From assembly GCA_002269645.1 (NCBI GenBank), contig NIVC01005026.1:1-28405 (forward strand): a DNA stretch of 28,405 nucleotides, read 5' to 3'. Below the pieces are notes generated by a model. That model ran no database searches, was not told where the DNA came from, and was given only the letters and a program-made list of their open reading frames with translations. This DNA comes from Macrostomum lignano (Eukaryota). Numbering within the stretch: position 1 is the first letter of the stretch; each line of letters opens with the position of its first letter. The position numbers and the translations under genes were made by a program. Shown piece by piece: positions 1,060 to 26,855 of this stretch.

Positions 1060-15565
<14,506 letters not shown>

Positions 15566-16035: not shown

Positions 16036-17115
16036 GATCTGCGAGGCCCAGCAGCTGACGATCTGAGAGGCTGTTGGCCCAGCAACTGAGAATCTGGGAG
16101 GCTGGTGGCCCAGCAACTGAGGATCTGGGAGGCTGTTGGCACAGTAACTGAGAATCTGGGAGGCTGACCCAGTAACTGAGGATCTGGGAGGCTGGTGGCC
16201 CAGTAACTGAGGATCTGGGAGGCTAGCCCAGTAACTGAGGATCTGGGATCTGGGAGGCTGTTGGCCCAGTAACTGAGGATCTGGGAGGCTAGCCCAGTAA
16301 CTGAGGATCTGGGAGGCTGTTGGCCCAGTAACTGAGGATCTGGGAGGCTGTGGCACAGTAACTGAGGATCTGGGAGGCTGACCCAGCAACTGAGGATCTG
16401 GGAGGCTGTTGGCCCAGTAACTGAGGATCTGGGAGGCTGCTGGCCAGTAACTGAGGATCTGGGAGGCTGTTGGCCCAGTAACTGAGGATCTGGGAGGCTG
16501 GTGGCCCAGTAACTGAGGATCTGGGAGGCTGACCCAGTAACTGAGGATCTGGGAGGCTGGTGGCCCAGTAACTGAGGATCTGGGAGGCTGGTGGCCCAGC
16601 AACTGAGGATCTGGGAGGCTGTTGGCCAGTAACTGAGGATCTGGGAGGCTGGTGGCCCAGCAACTGAGGATCTGGGAGGCTGTTGGCCCAGTAACTGAGG
16701 ATCTGGGAGGCTGGCCCAGTAACTGAGGATCTGGGAGGCTGTTGGCCCAGTAACTGAGGATCTGGGAGGCTGTGGCACAGTAACTGAGGATCTGGGAGGC
16801 TGACCCAGCAACTGAGGATCTGGGAGGCTGTTGGCCCAGTAACTGAGGATCTGGGAGGCTGCTGGCCAGTAACTGAGGATCTGGGAGGCTGTTGGCCCAG
16901 TAACTGAGGATCTGGGAGGCTGGTGGCCCAGTAACTGAGGATCTGGGAGGCTGACCCAGTAACTGAGGATCTGGGAGGCTGGTGGCCCAGTAACTGAGGA
17001 TCTGGGAGGCTGGTGGCCCAGCAACTGAGGATCTGGGAGGCTGTTGGCACAGTAACTGAGGATCTGGGAGGCTGGCCCAGCAACTGAGGATCTGGGAGGC
17101 TGGCCCAGCAACTGA
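16036..17115. repeat. 27-31-bp minisatellite (CCCAGTAACTGAGGATCTGGGAGGCTG[TTGG])
   Basis: Invariant core with a variable linker; lies between the convergent 3' ends of the NRG-like and COMMD genes. Confidence 0.95.
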
Positions 17116-21153: not shown

Positions 21154-21576
21154 TCAGTCCTTTTTAGTCCGCCTGTCCTTAGCCTCGGTCAGCAGCCGGG
21201 CTCTCTCCTTATCAACAGTCAAGTTCATCATCTGATAGATGAGGAAGCACGGAATCACCACGCAGTTGACCAGCACCGGCACAGACCAGATAAAGGTAAT
21301 GAAAAATCCAGGTGAATCGAAGTACTGCTCCCCAAATCTGAGGACTCGCCAGTGCGTCGCCAACTGACGATTGACGGCATCGGCCGCCAAGACGCTGGCT
21401 AGAAGCAGCAAAAGCAAGCCAAACAGTAGCCAACTTCTTCTGCGCAGCAACAATATCAGCAACAGGCAAACAGGATGAATGCTCAGCAATATTAACAGGC
21501 CGGGCTCCGTACGCCAAGATATTGTTGACAGGGCGGACAGCGGGCCCGAGATCTGGCTTGTGTCAATCCAGTCCAT
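21154..21576 (-). CDS. TMEM18: Transmembrane protein 18, intronless, 140 aa
   Basis: W-TEP-L, hydrophobic helices, and NRQLATHWRVLRFGEQYFDSPGFFITFIWSVPVLVN resemble TMEM18 (INE..A.NWR.F...QYFDS.G.FIS...S.PLLVN); basic C-terminus. Confidence 0.9.
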   Translation of the reverse strand: MDWIDTSQISGPLSALSTISWRTEPGLLILLSIHPVCLLLILLLRRRSWLLFGLLLLLLASVLAADAVNRQLATHWRVLRFGEQYFDSPGFFITFIWSVPVLVNCVVIPCFLIYQMMNLTVDKERARLLTEAKDRRTKKD

Positions 21577-22089: not shown

Positions 22090-22298
22090 CTCAGCTCTCT
22101 TATTATTTTTCTTTTCTCCTCTCCTATCTCCCCTCTTCTCTCGCCTCGCCCCACTTCTCTCTCCTCTCATCTCCCCCTTTTCTCTTCTCTCCCTCTTGTC
22201 TCTCCTCTCCTCTCTTCTCTCTACTCTCCTCTCTTCTCTCTCCTCTCCCCTCTCCTCTCTCCTCTCATCTCCCCATTTTCTCTTCTCTCCCCTCTTGT
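22090..22298. repeat. CT-rich microsatellite, left part (split by the retrotransposon)
   Basis: Continues at 26724-26855; CTCTCCCCTCTTGT is duplicated on both sides of the element. Confidence 0.9.
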
Positions 22299-22312
22299 TG
22301 TTGTTGTTGTTG

Positions 22313-25300
22313 TTACTCCCGGCCGGTTGGATCCGGGGGGCGTGTCTGCGCCCCTACCGTGCGGAGGAAATCGAGCGCGCGGAGGCCGTCCGTCGAGAGG
22401 ACGGCCAGGGACGGGTTTGGCCCTAGGGTGCGGGCCCGAAGGTCGTCAAGGGCCCGGCAGTGCAGGAGGACGTGGGCCACGTCTTCGTCGGCGGCCCCGC
22501 AGCGGGGGCAGGTGGCGGCGGTGTCCAGGCCGATCCGGTGCCGATACCAGCGTAGGAGCGGTGAGTGGCCCGTGCGCAGCTGGGCGAGGGTCACCGCGTC
22601 GGCCCGGTTAAGGCGTGGCCGCGGGGCGGCGATGGCGGTTGCCAGACGGTGGGTGGCGCAGTGCGGGTCGGCCGCGTTGGCTTCGCGGGTGCGCTCGGCG
22701 AGGACCCGGCGGAGGGCGGCCCGCGCTGACCCGAAGTCGATCGGCGTCTCGTTCTGGGGGAGGCCGGCCGCGGTCTTGGCGGTGACGTCCGCAGCATCGT
22801 TCCGCCGGAGGTCGCAGTGGCTGGGGACCCATTGCAGCCAGATTGGGAAGCGGGCGGCGACGTGGGTCAGCAGCGTCCAGATCTCCCGGCACGCTGGCGA
22901 GGAGGACTTGGACGGTCCCTTCTCGAGGGCTCGGAGCAGGGACTGCGAGTCCGTCAGGCAGCGGAGGCCGCTCAGGGAGGCAAGGTCCGGCCTGGAGGCG
23001 ACGTGCTGAAGCCCCAGCCGGAGAGCCGACTCCTCGGCACGGAAGGAGGAAGAGTAACGGCCCGCAGCCTGCGACAGGTGGACTGGCGGCGCGGTCTTGC
23101 TGAAGATGACCGCCCCCGCTCCGCCGTTGAGGGTGCCCCCGGAGGCTGAACCGTCTGTCCAGAGCTCCAGGTCGGCGGGCGGGAGGCTCGCCAGCGTCTC
23201 CAGCGCGGCCAGCTTTCTGACGTGGGGCGCCTCCTCTCGGGAGGTCGCGGTCAGGAGGTCGCAGCGGATGGTGATCCGGCTGGTGTCGGACCATGGCGGC
23301 GGAGGGAGGTTTTCCTGCTCCCGGGGGAGGGTGGCCAGGCCGGCGGCGGCGCTCAGGTGCTGCGCCGAGTCGCGCCAGTTCCTACGGAAGGCCCCAGGCT
23401 CCCCGTGAGCGCGCAAGCGGGGCGTAGAGGTCTTGCCCGCTGCAGCGCGGAGCGGAGTCGGTTGTCGGTGACGGAGGGCTCGCTCGAACAGGGCTGCGCC
23501 TGCCGCCTCCGCTCTGGTCGCCAGGGGCACGAGGTCGGCCTCAGCCATGAGGGCGCCAATGGCGGTCGAGCGGCAGCAGCCAGTGATGACGCGGGCGGCC
23601 GATCGGTGCGCAATCTCGACTTCGTCCCGGCAGGAGTCGGACGCGAAGGTGAGCCACGTGGAGGCGCCGTGGAGCGCGGCCGCCTCCGCGTAGGTGCGGT
23701 AGAGCTGGGCGAGGCGCTGGCCGTCCTGGCCCCAATCGCGGCCCGCGAGGCAGCGTAGGACGCCGGTGCGCTGCTGGAGGGCGCGGCGCCGGAGCTCGGC
23801 GTGGTGGCGGAAGGTCAGCTAGGAGTCGAGGTGCACTCCCAGGAGCCTCGGATGCAGCTCGAACGGAGCTGGCGAGTCGCCGAGGAGGATGCGCGGCTGG
23901 ACCTTTCCGTTGACCTCCCGGGGGTCGAGCGAGAAGAAAGCGACGACCGACTGGTTCGGCTCAGGTCCACCTTCCAGGTTTGGGACCAGCGCACGAGCCA
24001 GTCGGCCGCCGGTTGCAGGGCCCGCTCACACTCCCGAGGGGTGGTCCCTTGCGCGCCGAAGGTGCTGTCGTCGGCGTACGCCAGCGTGAGGCAGTTCGTG
24101 GGGGCGCCGTCCAGGAGGTCGTCCATGTAGATCACCCACAGGATCGGGGCGAGGACCGACCCCTGCGGCAGCCCCTCGGAGAACACGGTTGGCTTGCAGG
24201 CCGCACTAACCCACCGCACGAAGGCCCTCCTGTCGGAGAGAAATCCCTTGAGCCAGCGGATGAGGCACGTGGGGATCCCCTTCCGACCGAGCTTGACGAT
24301 GAGGGCGGCTCTCCAGACGCGGTCGTAGGCTCTGGAGAAGTCTGCAAGGAGCAGAGCGGTGCGGGCTGCCGGCTTCTTGGCCTGGAAACCGTCAAAAATG
24401 TACTGGGCCGCCGCGGCGATGTGCTCCTCCGTGGAGCGGCCCTGACGGAAACCGGCTTGCGACGGGTGGAGAGCGTCATTTGCCTCGAGGATGTAGGACA
24501 GCCGCTCGTTCACCATCTTCTCCGCGAGCTTGCCCAGGCAGCTGAGGAGGCTGATAGGGCGGAAGCTGGATGTCAGGCCGGCTGGCTTGTCCGATTTGGG
24601 GATCGGGCGGATCTCCGCAAGGCGCCACGGGGCGGACACCTCCCCCGTCCTCCACGAGAGGTTCAGGAGGTCCAGGAGGCAGCGGAGCCCCAGGTCGGAC
24701 AGATGCTTCAGCATGATGTTCGCGACACCGTCCGGTCCCGGGGCCGAGCGGTCCGGCAGGCGCACCAAGGCGCGGCGGAGGGCGTCGGGCTGGAAGTCGG
24801 AGCAGGGGCCGCTGCGGAGGCCTTGGCAGCTGCAGGGGGCGCGGAGCGTGTGACGGGCTTCTTGGATGACCGGCCGGTCTTCCGCCTTGTTCTTGGGGAG
24901 CCTGCTGACGGCCGCGTACTCCCGGCAGAAAAGCGCGGCCTTCTGTTTGTCGGAGACGGCCGGTGCCCCCGTGGAGCCCTGGATGGCAGCCGACGAGGGG
25001 GTGCCCTGGGACCGTCCGTCGAGGGCCCGGATGATCCGCCAGAGGTCGGCGGAACACAGGTCGTGACCCGGGTCAGTGATGAAATCACGCCACAGCGACT
25101 CCTTGGCGCGGCAGATGGCGTGAGCAGCCGCGGCGGCAGCAGCCTGGTACGCGGCCGAGAGCGCCGGGTCGTCCGGGCTCGCGCGAAGCGCTTCGAGCGC
25201 CGCGCGGCGGGCGGTGCAGGCCGCCTCGGCTTCCGGGCACCACCAGGCGATCGGGGCGCGCCGGCAGCCTCTCGGGATGGCCGCCTTGGCGGCGCTGGTG

Positions 25301-26681
25301 ACGGCGGACGCGAACCGGTTGGCGGCGACGGGCACCGTGCGTGGGGGGCGCTCCGGCCAGCTGGCCAGGGCCTGGTCGAGGGTCCGCTGGAACAGGTCCC
25401 AGTCCGCCTTGTGGTAGGCGTACCGCGTCAGGCGCTTGGAGCTGGAGCGGGCCGGGCCAGGAGGCTGCGATGTCGATGATGATCGGCAGGTGGTCTGAGC
25501 CGATGTGCTCCCCGGTTCGCCACTCGATCCGGTCTTGCCAGGAGGCGTGGGCGAAGGAGACGTCAGGGGAGCTCGGCAGGCCGCGGGGGCTGATCCTAGT
25601 TGGGGAGCCGTCGTTCAGAGCGACCAGGTCGTAGGTCGTCGCCCAGTCTTCGAGGGCCCTGCCCAGCTCGTCGTCGTCCGCCGAGGCGTCCCACATCCCG
25701 TGGTGGGCGTTGAAGTCGCCCAGCACCAACGAGTCCCGTGAAACGGGGATCCAGTCGGGCTCGAAGGCGTCCGTGCGGCCGTCTGCGGCGCGGACCGGCG
25801 GGAGGTAGATGTTGATCACATCCAGGGGACGTGGTAGCCGGGGGTCGTGGATACGGAGGCCCGAGGCTTCGGCGGACGTGGCGTGGGTGACGAGCTCGCC
25901 TAGTGGAAGGTCGGCGAATTGAATGCCCTCCTTGACAAGGAAGCAGACGCCCCCGTGGTGGGTTCTGGCTGCCTCCCCGTCGCGGCCGATGTTGCGGTCC
26001 TTCCGGCCAGCGATCTGCCACCCTTTGAGGCGTGGGGCCGCTGTGTTGCCGGACAGGTTCGTCTCCTGGATGCAGGCGACGTCGGCGCCCTGCTTCTCCA
26101 GGAAGTGGAGCAGTTCCAGCTTGCGGGAGCGGAGCCCTGCCGCGTTGAGCTGGACGATGCGGAAAGCCGCCCCGCTGTTGTTCGGCGCCCCCGCCCGCGC
26201 TGGTTGCGCCATCAGGGGGGGCGGGGGTGCCGGTGCGGGGTTCGGGGGAGGTGGAGTCGTAGCCGTTGGCGTCTGGTGGGTGCCAGTGGGGCCTGCAGCC
26301 GCGGAGGGGGCCGGAGTCGCAGCGGGCTGCGGCGCTGAAGCGGCAGGCTGGTGGGCGCAGGTGGGACAGTGCCGCGGTGCCTTGTCCCGGTGGAGCCGGT
26401 TGATAGCCGCAATAGTGAGGCGGGAACAGCGGCGGTGCCACCACAGGCCGCAGTCGGAGCAGCAGGTGGAGTAGCCCCTGGCTACCTCCGCACGGGAAGG
26501 CCGGCCCAGGGTTGGACTCGACGTCTCCAGCTCTGAGAAGCAGCTGAGCCAGGTGAGCTGGGAGGCCTGGCTCAGCGTGGAAAAACCCGGGGCGCTCGAA
26601 GACCCTCGCACGGGTCCGGGGTGGTGGCTGCACTTGGCCGGGCGAACCCGGACGGTCCCGCCGCGTGAAGGCGGCAGCCAT
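22313..26681 (-). pseudogene. Disrupted single retrotransposon ORF
   Basis: APE motifs QLNAAGL, IQET, GDFNAH, SDHLPI. RT motifs FRPISLL, QAGFR, ADFSRAYD, PQGSVLAP, YADD. RNase H motifs WTDGS, RAEE, TDSQS, WVPSH, NDAAD. Zn knuckle CPRC-x8-H-x4-C. Frameshifts near 26485, 25455 and 23958; in-frame TAG at 23819-23821. Confidence 0.9.
26502..26543 (-). other. 2A-like ribosomal skipping peptide LLLRAGDVESNPG|P
   Basis: Exact D-x-E-x-N-P-G-P consensus with an upstream LLxxAG helix, in frame with the ATG at 26681. Confidence 0.9.
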
Positions 26682-26724
26682 GGGAAGCGCGCGAGCGCGC
26701 TCCGGGAGGCGGAACCTCCCGACC
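26625..26724 (-). ncRNA. HDV/CPEB3-like self-cleaving ribozyme at the 5' end of the retrotransposon
   Basis: Hand fold: P2 UGGCUGC/GCAGCCA, P3 GCC/GGC, L3 UUCACGC, P1 3' strand GGGACC, J1.1 GU, P4 CCGGG-UUCG-CCCGG, J4/2 CCAA. G1 coincides with the TSD boundary. Confidence 0.75.
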
Positions 26725-26855
26725 TCTCCCCTCTTGTCTCTCCTCTCCTCTCTCTACTCTCTACTCTCTCCTCTCCCCTGTTCTCTCTCCTCTCCCCTCT
26801 TCTCTCCACTCTCCCCCCTCTCTACTCTCCCCTCTTCTCTTTCCTCTCCTCTCTG
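26724..26855. repeat. CT-rich microsatellite, right part
   Basis: Continuation of 22090-22298. Confidence 0.9.

Follow-up and report, generated by a model that had tools for sequence, protein, structure and literature searches.

The window analysed here is the whole 28,405-nt stretch of Macrostomum lignano contig NIVC01005026.1 (assembly GCA_002269645.1), and it carries on the minus strand a 4.4-kb LINE-type non-LTR retrotransposon, full-length and frameshifted, in the order ribozyme, 2A peptide, PHD finger, APE endonuclease, reverse transcriptase (RT), RNase H and (CAA)n tail. An AUG start codon (26679..26681, −) opens an ORF (25596..26681) that runs across the ribozyme into the 2A peptide, and translation of this ORF places the 2A 'StopGo' core DVESNPGP (26502..26525, −) in frame with the AUG. 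The APE domain lies at 25478..26152 (−; Pfam PF14529, 2.7e-16, and PF03372, 3.5e-11), the RT domain at 23986..24603 (−; PF00078, 6e-31) and the RNase H domain at 22766..23173 (−; PF00075, 2.4e-9), and the sequence ends with the stop codon TAA and a (CAA)6 3′ tail (22295..22315, −). Judged by the presence of APE and RT (with RNase H), of D(V/I)ExNPGP near the N-terminus, of a 3′ repeat tail and of a target-site duplication, the element is an APE-type non-LTR retrotransposon with an N-terminal 2A. Its RT has a Trypanosoma cruzi relative at 36% identity. ORF inspection revealed at least three frame breaks, so this copy is defective and may carry mutations, and self-comparison found no second copy elsewhere in the window. 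The window also has a TMEM18-like ORF.

The upstream copy of the target-site duplication, ACAAGAGGGGAGAG, occupies 26724..26737 (−), its last G (26724) belonging either to the duplication or to the element as its first base, and the downstream copy occupies 22285..22298 (−) and shares its first four bases with the CAA tail. Each flank has the 14-mer once, directly adjoining the element end, and the reconstructed empty site aligns gap-free across the junction with the neighbouring repeat unit; the insertion site is a purine-rich minisatellite and the duplication an ordinary one. Since the duplication adjoins both ends and the empty site can be reconstructed, the copied RNA began at (G)GUCGGG and the inherited 5′ end of the element is G26724 or G26723. 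This bears out the placement of the ribozyme at a retrotransposon 5′ end in an earlier note on this DNA, and the first element base so defined is also the start of the split P1 described below and its predicted cleavage site.

HDV-like ribozymes undergo Mg2+-dependent self-scission to a 5′-OH product and a 2′,3′-cyclic phosphate, and they share an L3 of 7-8 nt, a P1.1 formed with the two bases after P1′ and a J4/2 cytosine that is essential. Every core element of this class is found in minus strand 26724-26625, the initial 100 bases of the retrotransposon, with the strands P1-P2-P3-L3-P3′-P1′-P1.1-P4-J4/2-P2′ all present in the nested double-pseudoknot layout and in the expected order. The P2 5′ strand UGGCUGC (26674..26680, −) pairs over 7 bp with GCAGCCA (26625..26631, −), the 3-bp P3 (GCC/GGC) encloses L3 UUCACGC (26660..26672, −), the P1 3′ strand is GGGACC (26654..26659, −), and P4 is CCGGG-UUCG-CCCGG (26638..26651, −), 5 bp with a UUCG loop; P2, P3 and P4 are found both in the sequence and by the covariance model below. 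J1/4 is GU (26652..26653, −), the 3′ half of P1.1 and the same in 5/7 family members, and together with this L3 it permits the P1.1 partners C26667-G26653 and U26668/U26652. J4/2 is CCAAGU (26632..26637, −). The earlier parse of this strand was correct base for base, helices included, but its assignment of the catalytic cytosine to C26637, given there as established, was probably off by one: in an alignment of seven J4/2 sequences, in which the element L190 has an identical CCAAGU, the invariant cytosine (C then A, 7/7) aligns with C26636 while C26637 is not conserved. C26636 is therefore probably the catalytic residue. The A of the AUG (A26681) is itself the 1-nt J1/2, and the UG opens P2.

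The mammalian CPEB3 ribozyme has a 1-nt J1/2 (A), a 7-bp P2 and a 6-nt J4/2 with C in second place, a layout which the window shares in its one-A J1/2, 7-bp P2 and 6-nt J4/2. The 7-nt L3 is UUCACGU in CPEB3 (U20-U26, with U21, C22 and A23-C-G-U26 explicit) and UUCACGC in the window, and P1.1, which in CPEB3 involves G37 and U38, likewise consists of a C-G and a U-U pair with J1/4 GU and without J1.1/4 (10.1101/2022.09.22.508989), in agreement with the likeness that had been remarked on for L3 and the GU. The CPEB3 ribozyme differs in being intronic, outside mobile elements, and in having a contiguous 7-bp P1.

Homologous ribozymes were found upstream of 2A in six related elements (L190, L004, L191, L002, L195 and L001) from marine and other metagenomes, all of the 2A-PHD-APE-RT type, with the ribozyme immediately before 2A in some and about 200 nt away in others, and with the ribozyme read in frame with the downstream 2A in at least some family members. 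All four helices are fully paired in the window and in the six relatives. A hand-made structure-based alignment of these seven sequences shows compensatory changes at 16/18 helix positions with every cell paired, a count that applies at the level of the family, the junction of the two extra hairpins (H1 and H2, below) being known from a single sequence. Conservation across the family extends to L3, to the GU of J1/4 and to J4/2, L3 being UUCACGU in L190, L004 and L191 and the same with one extra C in L002. Leaders homologous to the 2A leader of the window occur in L004, L005, L190, L191 and L002, and no convincing ribozyme was found upstream of 2A in L003, L005, L192, L193 and L194.

R1, a covariance model whose only sources were L004 and L191, had its best match in 68 kb at 26678-26627 (−), with 28.3 bits and E 2.7e-5, aligning P2, P3 and P4. 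R1 ranked this core first, above 92 control loci preselected for a 24-nt core motif, of which the best reached 25.3 bits, only 3 bits below the window; this best control (L094) is bacterial, lacks the J4/2 cytosine and has no 2A. Realignment of the relatives to R1 with filters off was partly wrong, and R1 stays the sole model. A strict HDV descriptor found L001 and L002 and missed the split P1 of the window, and a permissive one, written in Python, gave hundreds of chance matches. The exact pattern GCCTTCACGYGGCN{4,5}CCGTCC had 0 matches in viral contigs and 92 each in metagenome and genome contigs; those inspected were chance matches in bacterial DNA, and the matches served as negative controls only. 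An 11-nt identity between the first bases of the window and L003 (GGTCGGGAGGT) was at chance level. Rfam gave no match at gathering score, and none to HDV-type families at E up to 10 in 601 nt, but the Rfam models also miss the conventional relatives, which argues against membership in those narrow families and not against the fold. That six related elements have homologous ribozymes, that the helices pair fully and show compensatory changes, and that the covariance model detects the core independently together support 26724-26625 as a genuine HDV/CPEB3-type ribozyme core at the retrotransposon 5′ end.

To our knowledge, every described HDV-like ribozyme has a contiguous P1 of 6-7 bp whose 5′ strand starts at the cleavage site. 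In the window the complement of GGGACC is divided: GGU (P1a, 26722..26724, −) pairs with ACC (26656-26654), with predicted cleavage 5′ of G26724, and CCC (P1b, 26682..26684, −) pairs with GGG (26659-26657). Between them, inserted inside the P1 5′ strand, stand hairpin H1, CGGGAGG-UUCCG-CCUCCCG (26703..26721, −), and hairpin H2, GAGCGCG-CUCG-CGCGCUU with one G-U pair (26685..26702, −), both seen in the sequence and on folding. GGU (26724-26722) and CCC (26684-26682) make up the exact complement of GGGACC (26659-26654) with zero unpaired junction bases, just as the earlier note had it. GGUC/GACC plus CC/GG is an alternative register, so that P1 can have six pairs, divided 3+3 or 4+2 by a four-way junction. 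With its two hairpins, the 37-nt insert folds at −25.1 kcal/mol (z = −3.0; 0/200 shuffles as good), in the minimum free energy (MFE) structure of the first 71 nt GGUC/GACC closes around H1 and H2 (z = −3.2), and complementarity of the first 3 plus last 3 bases arose in 0.5% of shuffled 43-nt leaders. P1 is contiguous in 6/6 relatives, with a J1/2 of 2-5 nt, H1 and H2 are absent from 6/6, and no precedent for an interrupted P1 in HDV-like ribozymes was found in these relatives or in the literature consulted. The P1 of L004, L191 and L190 begins with GGU; in L004 and L191 similarity is lost just upstream of P1, which starts GGUUGU, and that of L190 starts GGUCGUC, the GGUCG being common to L190 and the window. 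The split P1, seen in one copy, is plausible but unproven. It is favoured over its one competitor, GGUUCC, by the 5′ boundary set by the duplication, the GGU start of the relatives, nearest-neighbour energies and chance rates, and the four-way P1 first proposed for this locus stands to that extent, as the feature of a single copy.

The explanation that we prefer, at somewhat better than even confidence, is a 5′-terminal HDV-like ribozyme with P1 rebuilt across a four-way junction and cleaving 5′ of G26724. A 37-nt module of two GC-rich hairpins would have been inserted within the P1 5′ strand in the lineage of this element, and P1 would have been rebuilt as GGU/ACC and CCC/GGG (or GGUC/GACC and CC/GG) over a perfect four-way junction, in which the unbroken strand GGGACC may hold P1 to its usual 6-bp geometry, with H1 and H2 stacked to one side. 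The element would be co-transcribed from upstream DNA, the J4/2 cytosine (most likely C26636) would catalyse cleavage 5′ of G26724, and the released RNA, starting GGUCGGG, would then be reverse-transcribed. The AUG 44 nt downstream, inside the ribozyme, would open the 2A-led ORF, and from this position the folded ribozyme may also serve uncapped translation, as has reportedly been proposed for R2.

The most serious rival, though an unlikely one, holds that the core is genuine but crippled by the two-hairpin insertion and that the 5′ end at 26724 comes from an internal promoter at +1. The T. cruzi retrotransposon L1Tc joins both functions in its first 77 nt: the HDV-like ribozyme L1TcRz lies in the first ~77 nt and cleaves at +1 (PMC3185411, PMC3383444), and the internal promoter Pr77 initiates at +1 (PMC3383444), so that a promoter of this kind would produce an identical 5′ end with no need of cleavage. 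The DNA of H1 and H2, which as two inverted repeats has a trait often seen in protein-binding DNA sites, might then be the promoter, with GGU...CCC as the leftover of an ancestral contiguous GGUCCC. The contiguous P1 of all relatives is consistent with this, as is the finding that P1 defects lower activity in other HDV-like ribozymes, where mismatches in P1 alone can abolish it (PMC3774820). Against it, the gap is filled by two perfect hairpins with zero unpaired bases, which preserved P1 stacking would require and which is not expected of a random insertion, and the core has not decayed: its helices are perfect and its J4/2 is identical to that of L190.

Much less probable is a conventional, contiguous P1 made by GGUUCC (26716-26711) with GGGACC, which would cleave 5′ of G26716 and leave H2 as a P1.2-like helix within a 30-nt J1/2. 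The earlier note had raised this competing strand, and it does exist, with one U-G pair: apart from the split strand, the 420 nt upstream contain no 6-bp complement but this one. The P1 of L004 likewise begins GGUU, and structured J1/2 (P1.2) domains are known (PMC4908430). However, the 8 nt 5′ of its cleavage site (GGUCGGGA) fall inside the target-site duplication and were thus part of the copied RNA. H1 would have to melt, at a cost of about 9 kcal/mol (with P2 omitted, the GGUUCC fold reaches −30.5 kcal/mol and the split P1 −39.8 or −40.3), and a 6-mer of this type appears by chance in 17% of shuffled leaders. The fold also leaves a 12-nt single-stranded linker beside a 7-bp P2, an arrangement very slow in Agam-2 constructs (PMC4908430). 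cDNA snap-back, considered by reasoning as an origin of the H1 5′ arm, accounts for 5/8 nt only.

There is little to commend the proposal that the initial ~43 nt, from GGU to CCC, are non-ancestral and partly complementary by coincidence, acquired by template switching or from an upstream 'home site'. H1 and H2 are indeed found in no relative, and R2 does use upstream 28S sequence, carried on its RNA, as the P1 5′ strand (PMC3774820), but the minisatellite with its ordinary duplication is no conserved target, the P1 start of L190 has the same GGUCG, and cleavage would fall at 26724 even so. That the HDV-like parse arose by chance in GC-rich coding DNA, for which the Rfam result, a whole-region MFE z-score of only −1.4 and the bacterial control at 25.3 bits might be cited, is hardly credible given a covarying homologous structure that six related elements have in the same place, a parse that sits at the exact 5′ terminus, and the conservation of L3, J1/4 GU and J4/2.

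Within the preferred explanation, it is a tentative proposal, with chances a little short of even, that an HDV-like ribozyme occurring in nature can cleave although its P1 is divided by a perfect, branch-migrating four-way junction, which possibly acts as a folding gate. The junction would move between the registers 3+7+7+3 and 4+6+8+2 by branch migration, and such a gate could couple formation of the 5′-terminal hairpins to self-cleavage and to use of the buried start codon.

Among known systems, L1Tc and its ribozyme-promoter (ingi/L1Tc clade) share with the window a 5′ HDV-like ribozyme on a single-ORF APE-RT-RNase H element, and L1Tc also shares an ORF with N-terminal 2A (PMC3708506); L1TcRz however has an ordinary P1, whereas the ribozyme of the window is 100 nt with two hairpins within P1, and the element here also has a PHD finger behind 2A and has its start codon within the ribozyme. 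The RTE ribozyme drz-Agam-2 is likewise a retrotransposon HDV-like ribozyme with an extra helix near the P1-P2 connection, P1.2, which 'pinches' P1 and P2 together (PMC4908430), but this helix lies in J1/2 after a complete P1, whereas in the window the hairpins break into the 5′ strand of P1 and J1/2 consists of one A. In R2 as well, an HDV-like ribozyme at the 5′ end releases the element RNA from a co-transcript, the 5′ end is set by where P1 lies, and J1/2 is highly variable (PMC3774820); R2 differs in its REL endonuclease, its rDNA specificity and a contiguous P1 5′ strand, often of 28S sequence. Rex1, Crack, L2, CR1 and Ingi elements are known to encode, in one long ORF, an N-terminal 2A with a PHD finger and APE behind it (Odon et al. 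2013, PMC3708506), in a report which mentions no ribozymes, whereas the window and six relatives have one upstream of 2A.

Searches for HDV-like ribozymes usually employ descriptors that assume a contiguous P1 of 6-7 bp, and J1/2 and P4 are known sites of insertions. If the four-way-split P1 is active, the tolerance of the HDV-like fold would be wider than known, members of this kind would have been missed by current descriptor searches, and the junction beside the cleavage site would be a natural peripheral scaffold relevant to engineered switchable ribozymes. Independently of the split P1, the analysis shows that 2A-PHD-APE-RT elements carry at their 5′ ends a family of CPEB3-like ribozymes, which share L3 and P1.1 with CPEB3, so that self-cleavage and StopGo recoding, both of them non-canonical means of expression, are joined in one 5′ module; this family bears on the origin of the mammalian CPEB3 ribozyme.

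The proposed parse of the ribozyme on the minus strand (26724-26625) was reproduced exactly, with an identical string in which every pair is a standard pair. From 26724 it reads GGU, CGGGAGG-UUCCG-CCUCCCG (hairpin H1), GAGCGCG-CUCG-CGCGCUU (hairpin H2), CCC and A, and after this A it continues as UGGCUGC C GCC-UUCACGC-GGC GGGACC GU CCGGG-UUCG-CCCGG CCAAGU GCAGCCA to 26625. Joined, GGU and CCC do complement GGGACC exactly; the intervening 37 nt are taken up by two hairpins with 0 unpaired bases. The likeness of L3 and of the GU after P1 to CPEB3 likewise holds, P1.1 consisting of one C-G pair and a U-U pair, and in structure the core is closest to CPEB3, which shares this P1.1 and the same L3.

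An HDV-like ribozyme precedes a homologous 2A leader in six related metagenome elements, several of them marine: L004 (60-130) and L191 (269-340), both from TARA, L190 (1503-1563), L002 (251-378), L195 (729-827) and L001 (654-720). L190 reads GGUCGUC AUU GGGGG C GCC UUCACGU GGC GACGACU GC CGGC-GCAA-GCCG CCAAGU CCCUC, and L004 reads GGUUGUC AUC GGUGC U GCC UUCACGU GGC GACAACC GU CCCCUC...GAGGGG CCAGAAU GCACC. In our own structure-anchored alignment of these and the window, P1, P2, P3 and P4 are paired at every position in all seven sequences, and both sides have changed at 16 of 18 aligned helix positions. L3 UUCACGY and J1/4 GU are each conserved in 5 of 7, and C-A in J4/2 is conserved across the set. 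The L002 element has a second copy of its opening ~19 nt, with the 5′ strands of P1 and P2, just upstream of the ribozyme (221-264, tcttgcttcctgtgcgacc present twice); this may be a 5′-junction rearrangement. In another relative, L005 (1684-2990), the RNase H ORF belonging to an upstream copy is followed directly by a 2A leader homologous to that of the window, no ribozyme intervening, and the arrangement looks tandem or nested.

With L004 and L191 as its only source sequences, and restricted to P2, P3 and P4, a covariance model found the window as its top match in 68 kb (26678-26627, minus strand, 28.3 bits, E 2.7e-5). L190 was recovered at much the same score; recovery of L195 (E 0.13) and L001 (E 0.77) was weak. 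The window also ranked first against 92 metagenome loci picked for chance presence of the 24-nt core motif. The best of these controls, L094 (278-326), reached 25.3 bits, and on its own the model is therefore not overwhelming; this bacterial-looking contig has the core motif and a chance 5-bp 'P2', and lacks the J4/2 cytosine and a 2A. Short covariance-model scores are by themselves weak evidence for this motif. Rfam gave no match for the window and missed the conventional relatives too. Homology, position and covariation combined are overwhelming, and we are nearly certain that the ribozyme is genuine.

J4/2 is CCAAGU in the window and L190, CCAGAAU in L004, UCAAAAU in L191, CAAAGC in L002 and L195, and CCAAAU in L001. 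The invariant cytosine aligns with C26636 (J4/2 at 26632-26637, minus strand), and not with C26637, which the earlier note had named as catalytic; at the latter position L191 has U, and L002 and L195 have no base. In the 6-nt J4/2 of CPEB3 the catalytic C is the second. Judged from the alignment, a C26637U change may not be inactivating, and as a control it could mislead.

A minus-strand non-LTR retrotransposon occupies the block from ~22295 to 26724 (65-71% GC, with 36-50% for the window). Its APE (Pfam PF14529 2.7e-16, PF03372), RT (PF00078, 6e-31) and RNase H (PF00075, 2.4e-9) domains lie on that strand in three different frames and therefore imply at least three frame breaks; either this copy is defective or indel errors in the assembly are to blame. 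One break separates 2A from PHD finger (~26500-26470), another APE from RT (overlap 25335-25085) and a third RT from RNase H (23815-23548). The ORF starts at an AUG (26681-26679) within the ribozyme, made of the J1/2 A and the first two P2 bases, and encodes MAAAFTRRDRPG...LLLRAGDVESNPGP, a 2A 'StopGo' peptide, followed in a different frame by a PHD-like zinc finger. Read in frame with the 2A, the ribozyme gives ...AAFTRR... (26502-26681, minus strand). That of L190, likewise in this frame, gives GGAFTWRR and runs on into its own 2A (1501-1690), and the L190 AUG would be lost on cleavage. The 2A-PHD-APE order is known in several clades from a paper that is silent on ribozymes (PMC3708506). No close copy was found in the collections searched, the best protein relatives having 50% (APE) and 54-64% (RT) identity, and the window's own ORFs had no record in the sequence collections searched.

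Minisatellites crowd 137-21074 (40 TRF rows, periods 4 to 422 nt, for example 1214-2817, 6147-7462 and 16045-17115), and many long 'ORFs' there are repeat artefacts. Some 700 nt downstream of the 3′ flank of the element lies a eukaryotic host gene, an uninterrupted 140-aa TMEM18-like ORF (21154-21576, minus strand, Pfam TMEM18 3.5e-25) whose exact sequence was absent from the public protein collection. The element ends in TAA(CAA)6 and the target starts ACAA (22285-22315, minus strand), a match suggestive of tail-target microhomology at the priming step.

A purine-rich minisatellite (TRF rows 22115-22298 and 26723-26854) is the insertion site of the element, and the 14-mer ACAAGAGGGGAGAG occurs once per flank, adjoining each element end (26737-26724 and 22298-22285). 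An empty site was reconstructed from the upstream flank, one copy of the duplication and the downstream flank beyond it; over 99 nt it aligned to the neighbouring repeat unit with 5 mismatches and 5 gapped positions, 0 of these at the junction. The inherited element therefore begins at G26724 or G26723, the ambiguity arising because the target's next base is also G-compatible, and the duplication thus places the ribozyme at the retrotransposon 5′ end, as had been claimed. The reverse-transcribed RNA, however made, began (G)GUCGGGAGG. This boundary tells where the RNA began, not how the end arose: an internal promoter starting at +1 would give the same 5′ end even if the insertion killed the ribozyme, and L1Tc Pr77/L1TcRz is a precedent for a dual promoter/ribozyme (PMC3383444). 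L1TcRz/Pr77 is also the closest functional analogue, with an HDV-like ribozyme at +1, a single-ORF APE-RT-RNase H and an N-terminal 2A.

The competing contiguous complement GGUUCC, also pointed out earlier, is present at 26716-26711 and was the sole other 6-bp complement in the 420 nt upstream scanned. Cleavage at 26716 would take off GGUCGGGA; these 8 nt lie inside the target-site duplication bounds and were therefore on the template RNA, which argues against a cut there. L004 and L191 become similar within ~5 nt of the first P1 base, in keeping with the rule that elements begin at their cleavage site (PMC3774820, PMC3185411). P1 of the relatives opens GGU (GGUUGUC, GGUCGUC) against ...ACC or ...ACU, and the window opens GGUCG. 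With P2 omitted, the split P1 gave -39.8 kcal/mol (3+7+7+3) or -40.3 (4+6+8+2), and the GGUUCC fold, for which H1 must melt, -30.5. The two registers are near-isoenergetic because each of C26721, G26703 and C26684 can pair in two ways, making branch migration possible (26682-26724 and 26654-26659, minus strand). When the first 71 nt were folded without constraints, the MFE structure had GGUC/GACC closed round both hairpins (z = -3.2, 0/200 shuffles as good). A contiguous 6-bp complement arose anywhere in the leader in 16.5% of shuffles, and first-3-plus-last-3 complementarity in 0.5%. The GGUUCC fold would have a 12-nt single-stranded linker round a P1.2-like helix plus a 7-bp P2, a layout very slow in Agam-2 constructs (PMC4908430). 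The drz-Agam-2 P1.2, the closest analogue of the extra helices, sits in J1/2 and not within P1.

Inherited 5′ end, shared GGU start, modelled energy and chance rates thus favour the proposed four-way P1 over GGUUCC; against it, P1 is contiguous with a J1/2 of 2-5 nt in all six relatives, the window being the exception. GGU/ACC, CCC/GGG, H1 and H2 are known from one sequence, this single copy. Single P1 mismatches can abolish HDV-like activity (PMC3774820). With GGGACC as the continuous strand, an ordinary 6-bp P1 could be kept if P1a stacks on P1b and H1 on H2, and the other stacking isomer would break it. No published interrupted P1 in an HDV-like ribozyme was found in the literature searched, which is absence and not proof. 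The predicted four-way-junction P1 is the best-supported reading, one we believe slightly more than we doubt, and it would be new to the HDV-like fold.
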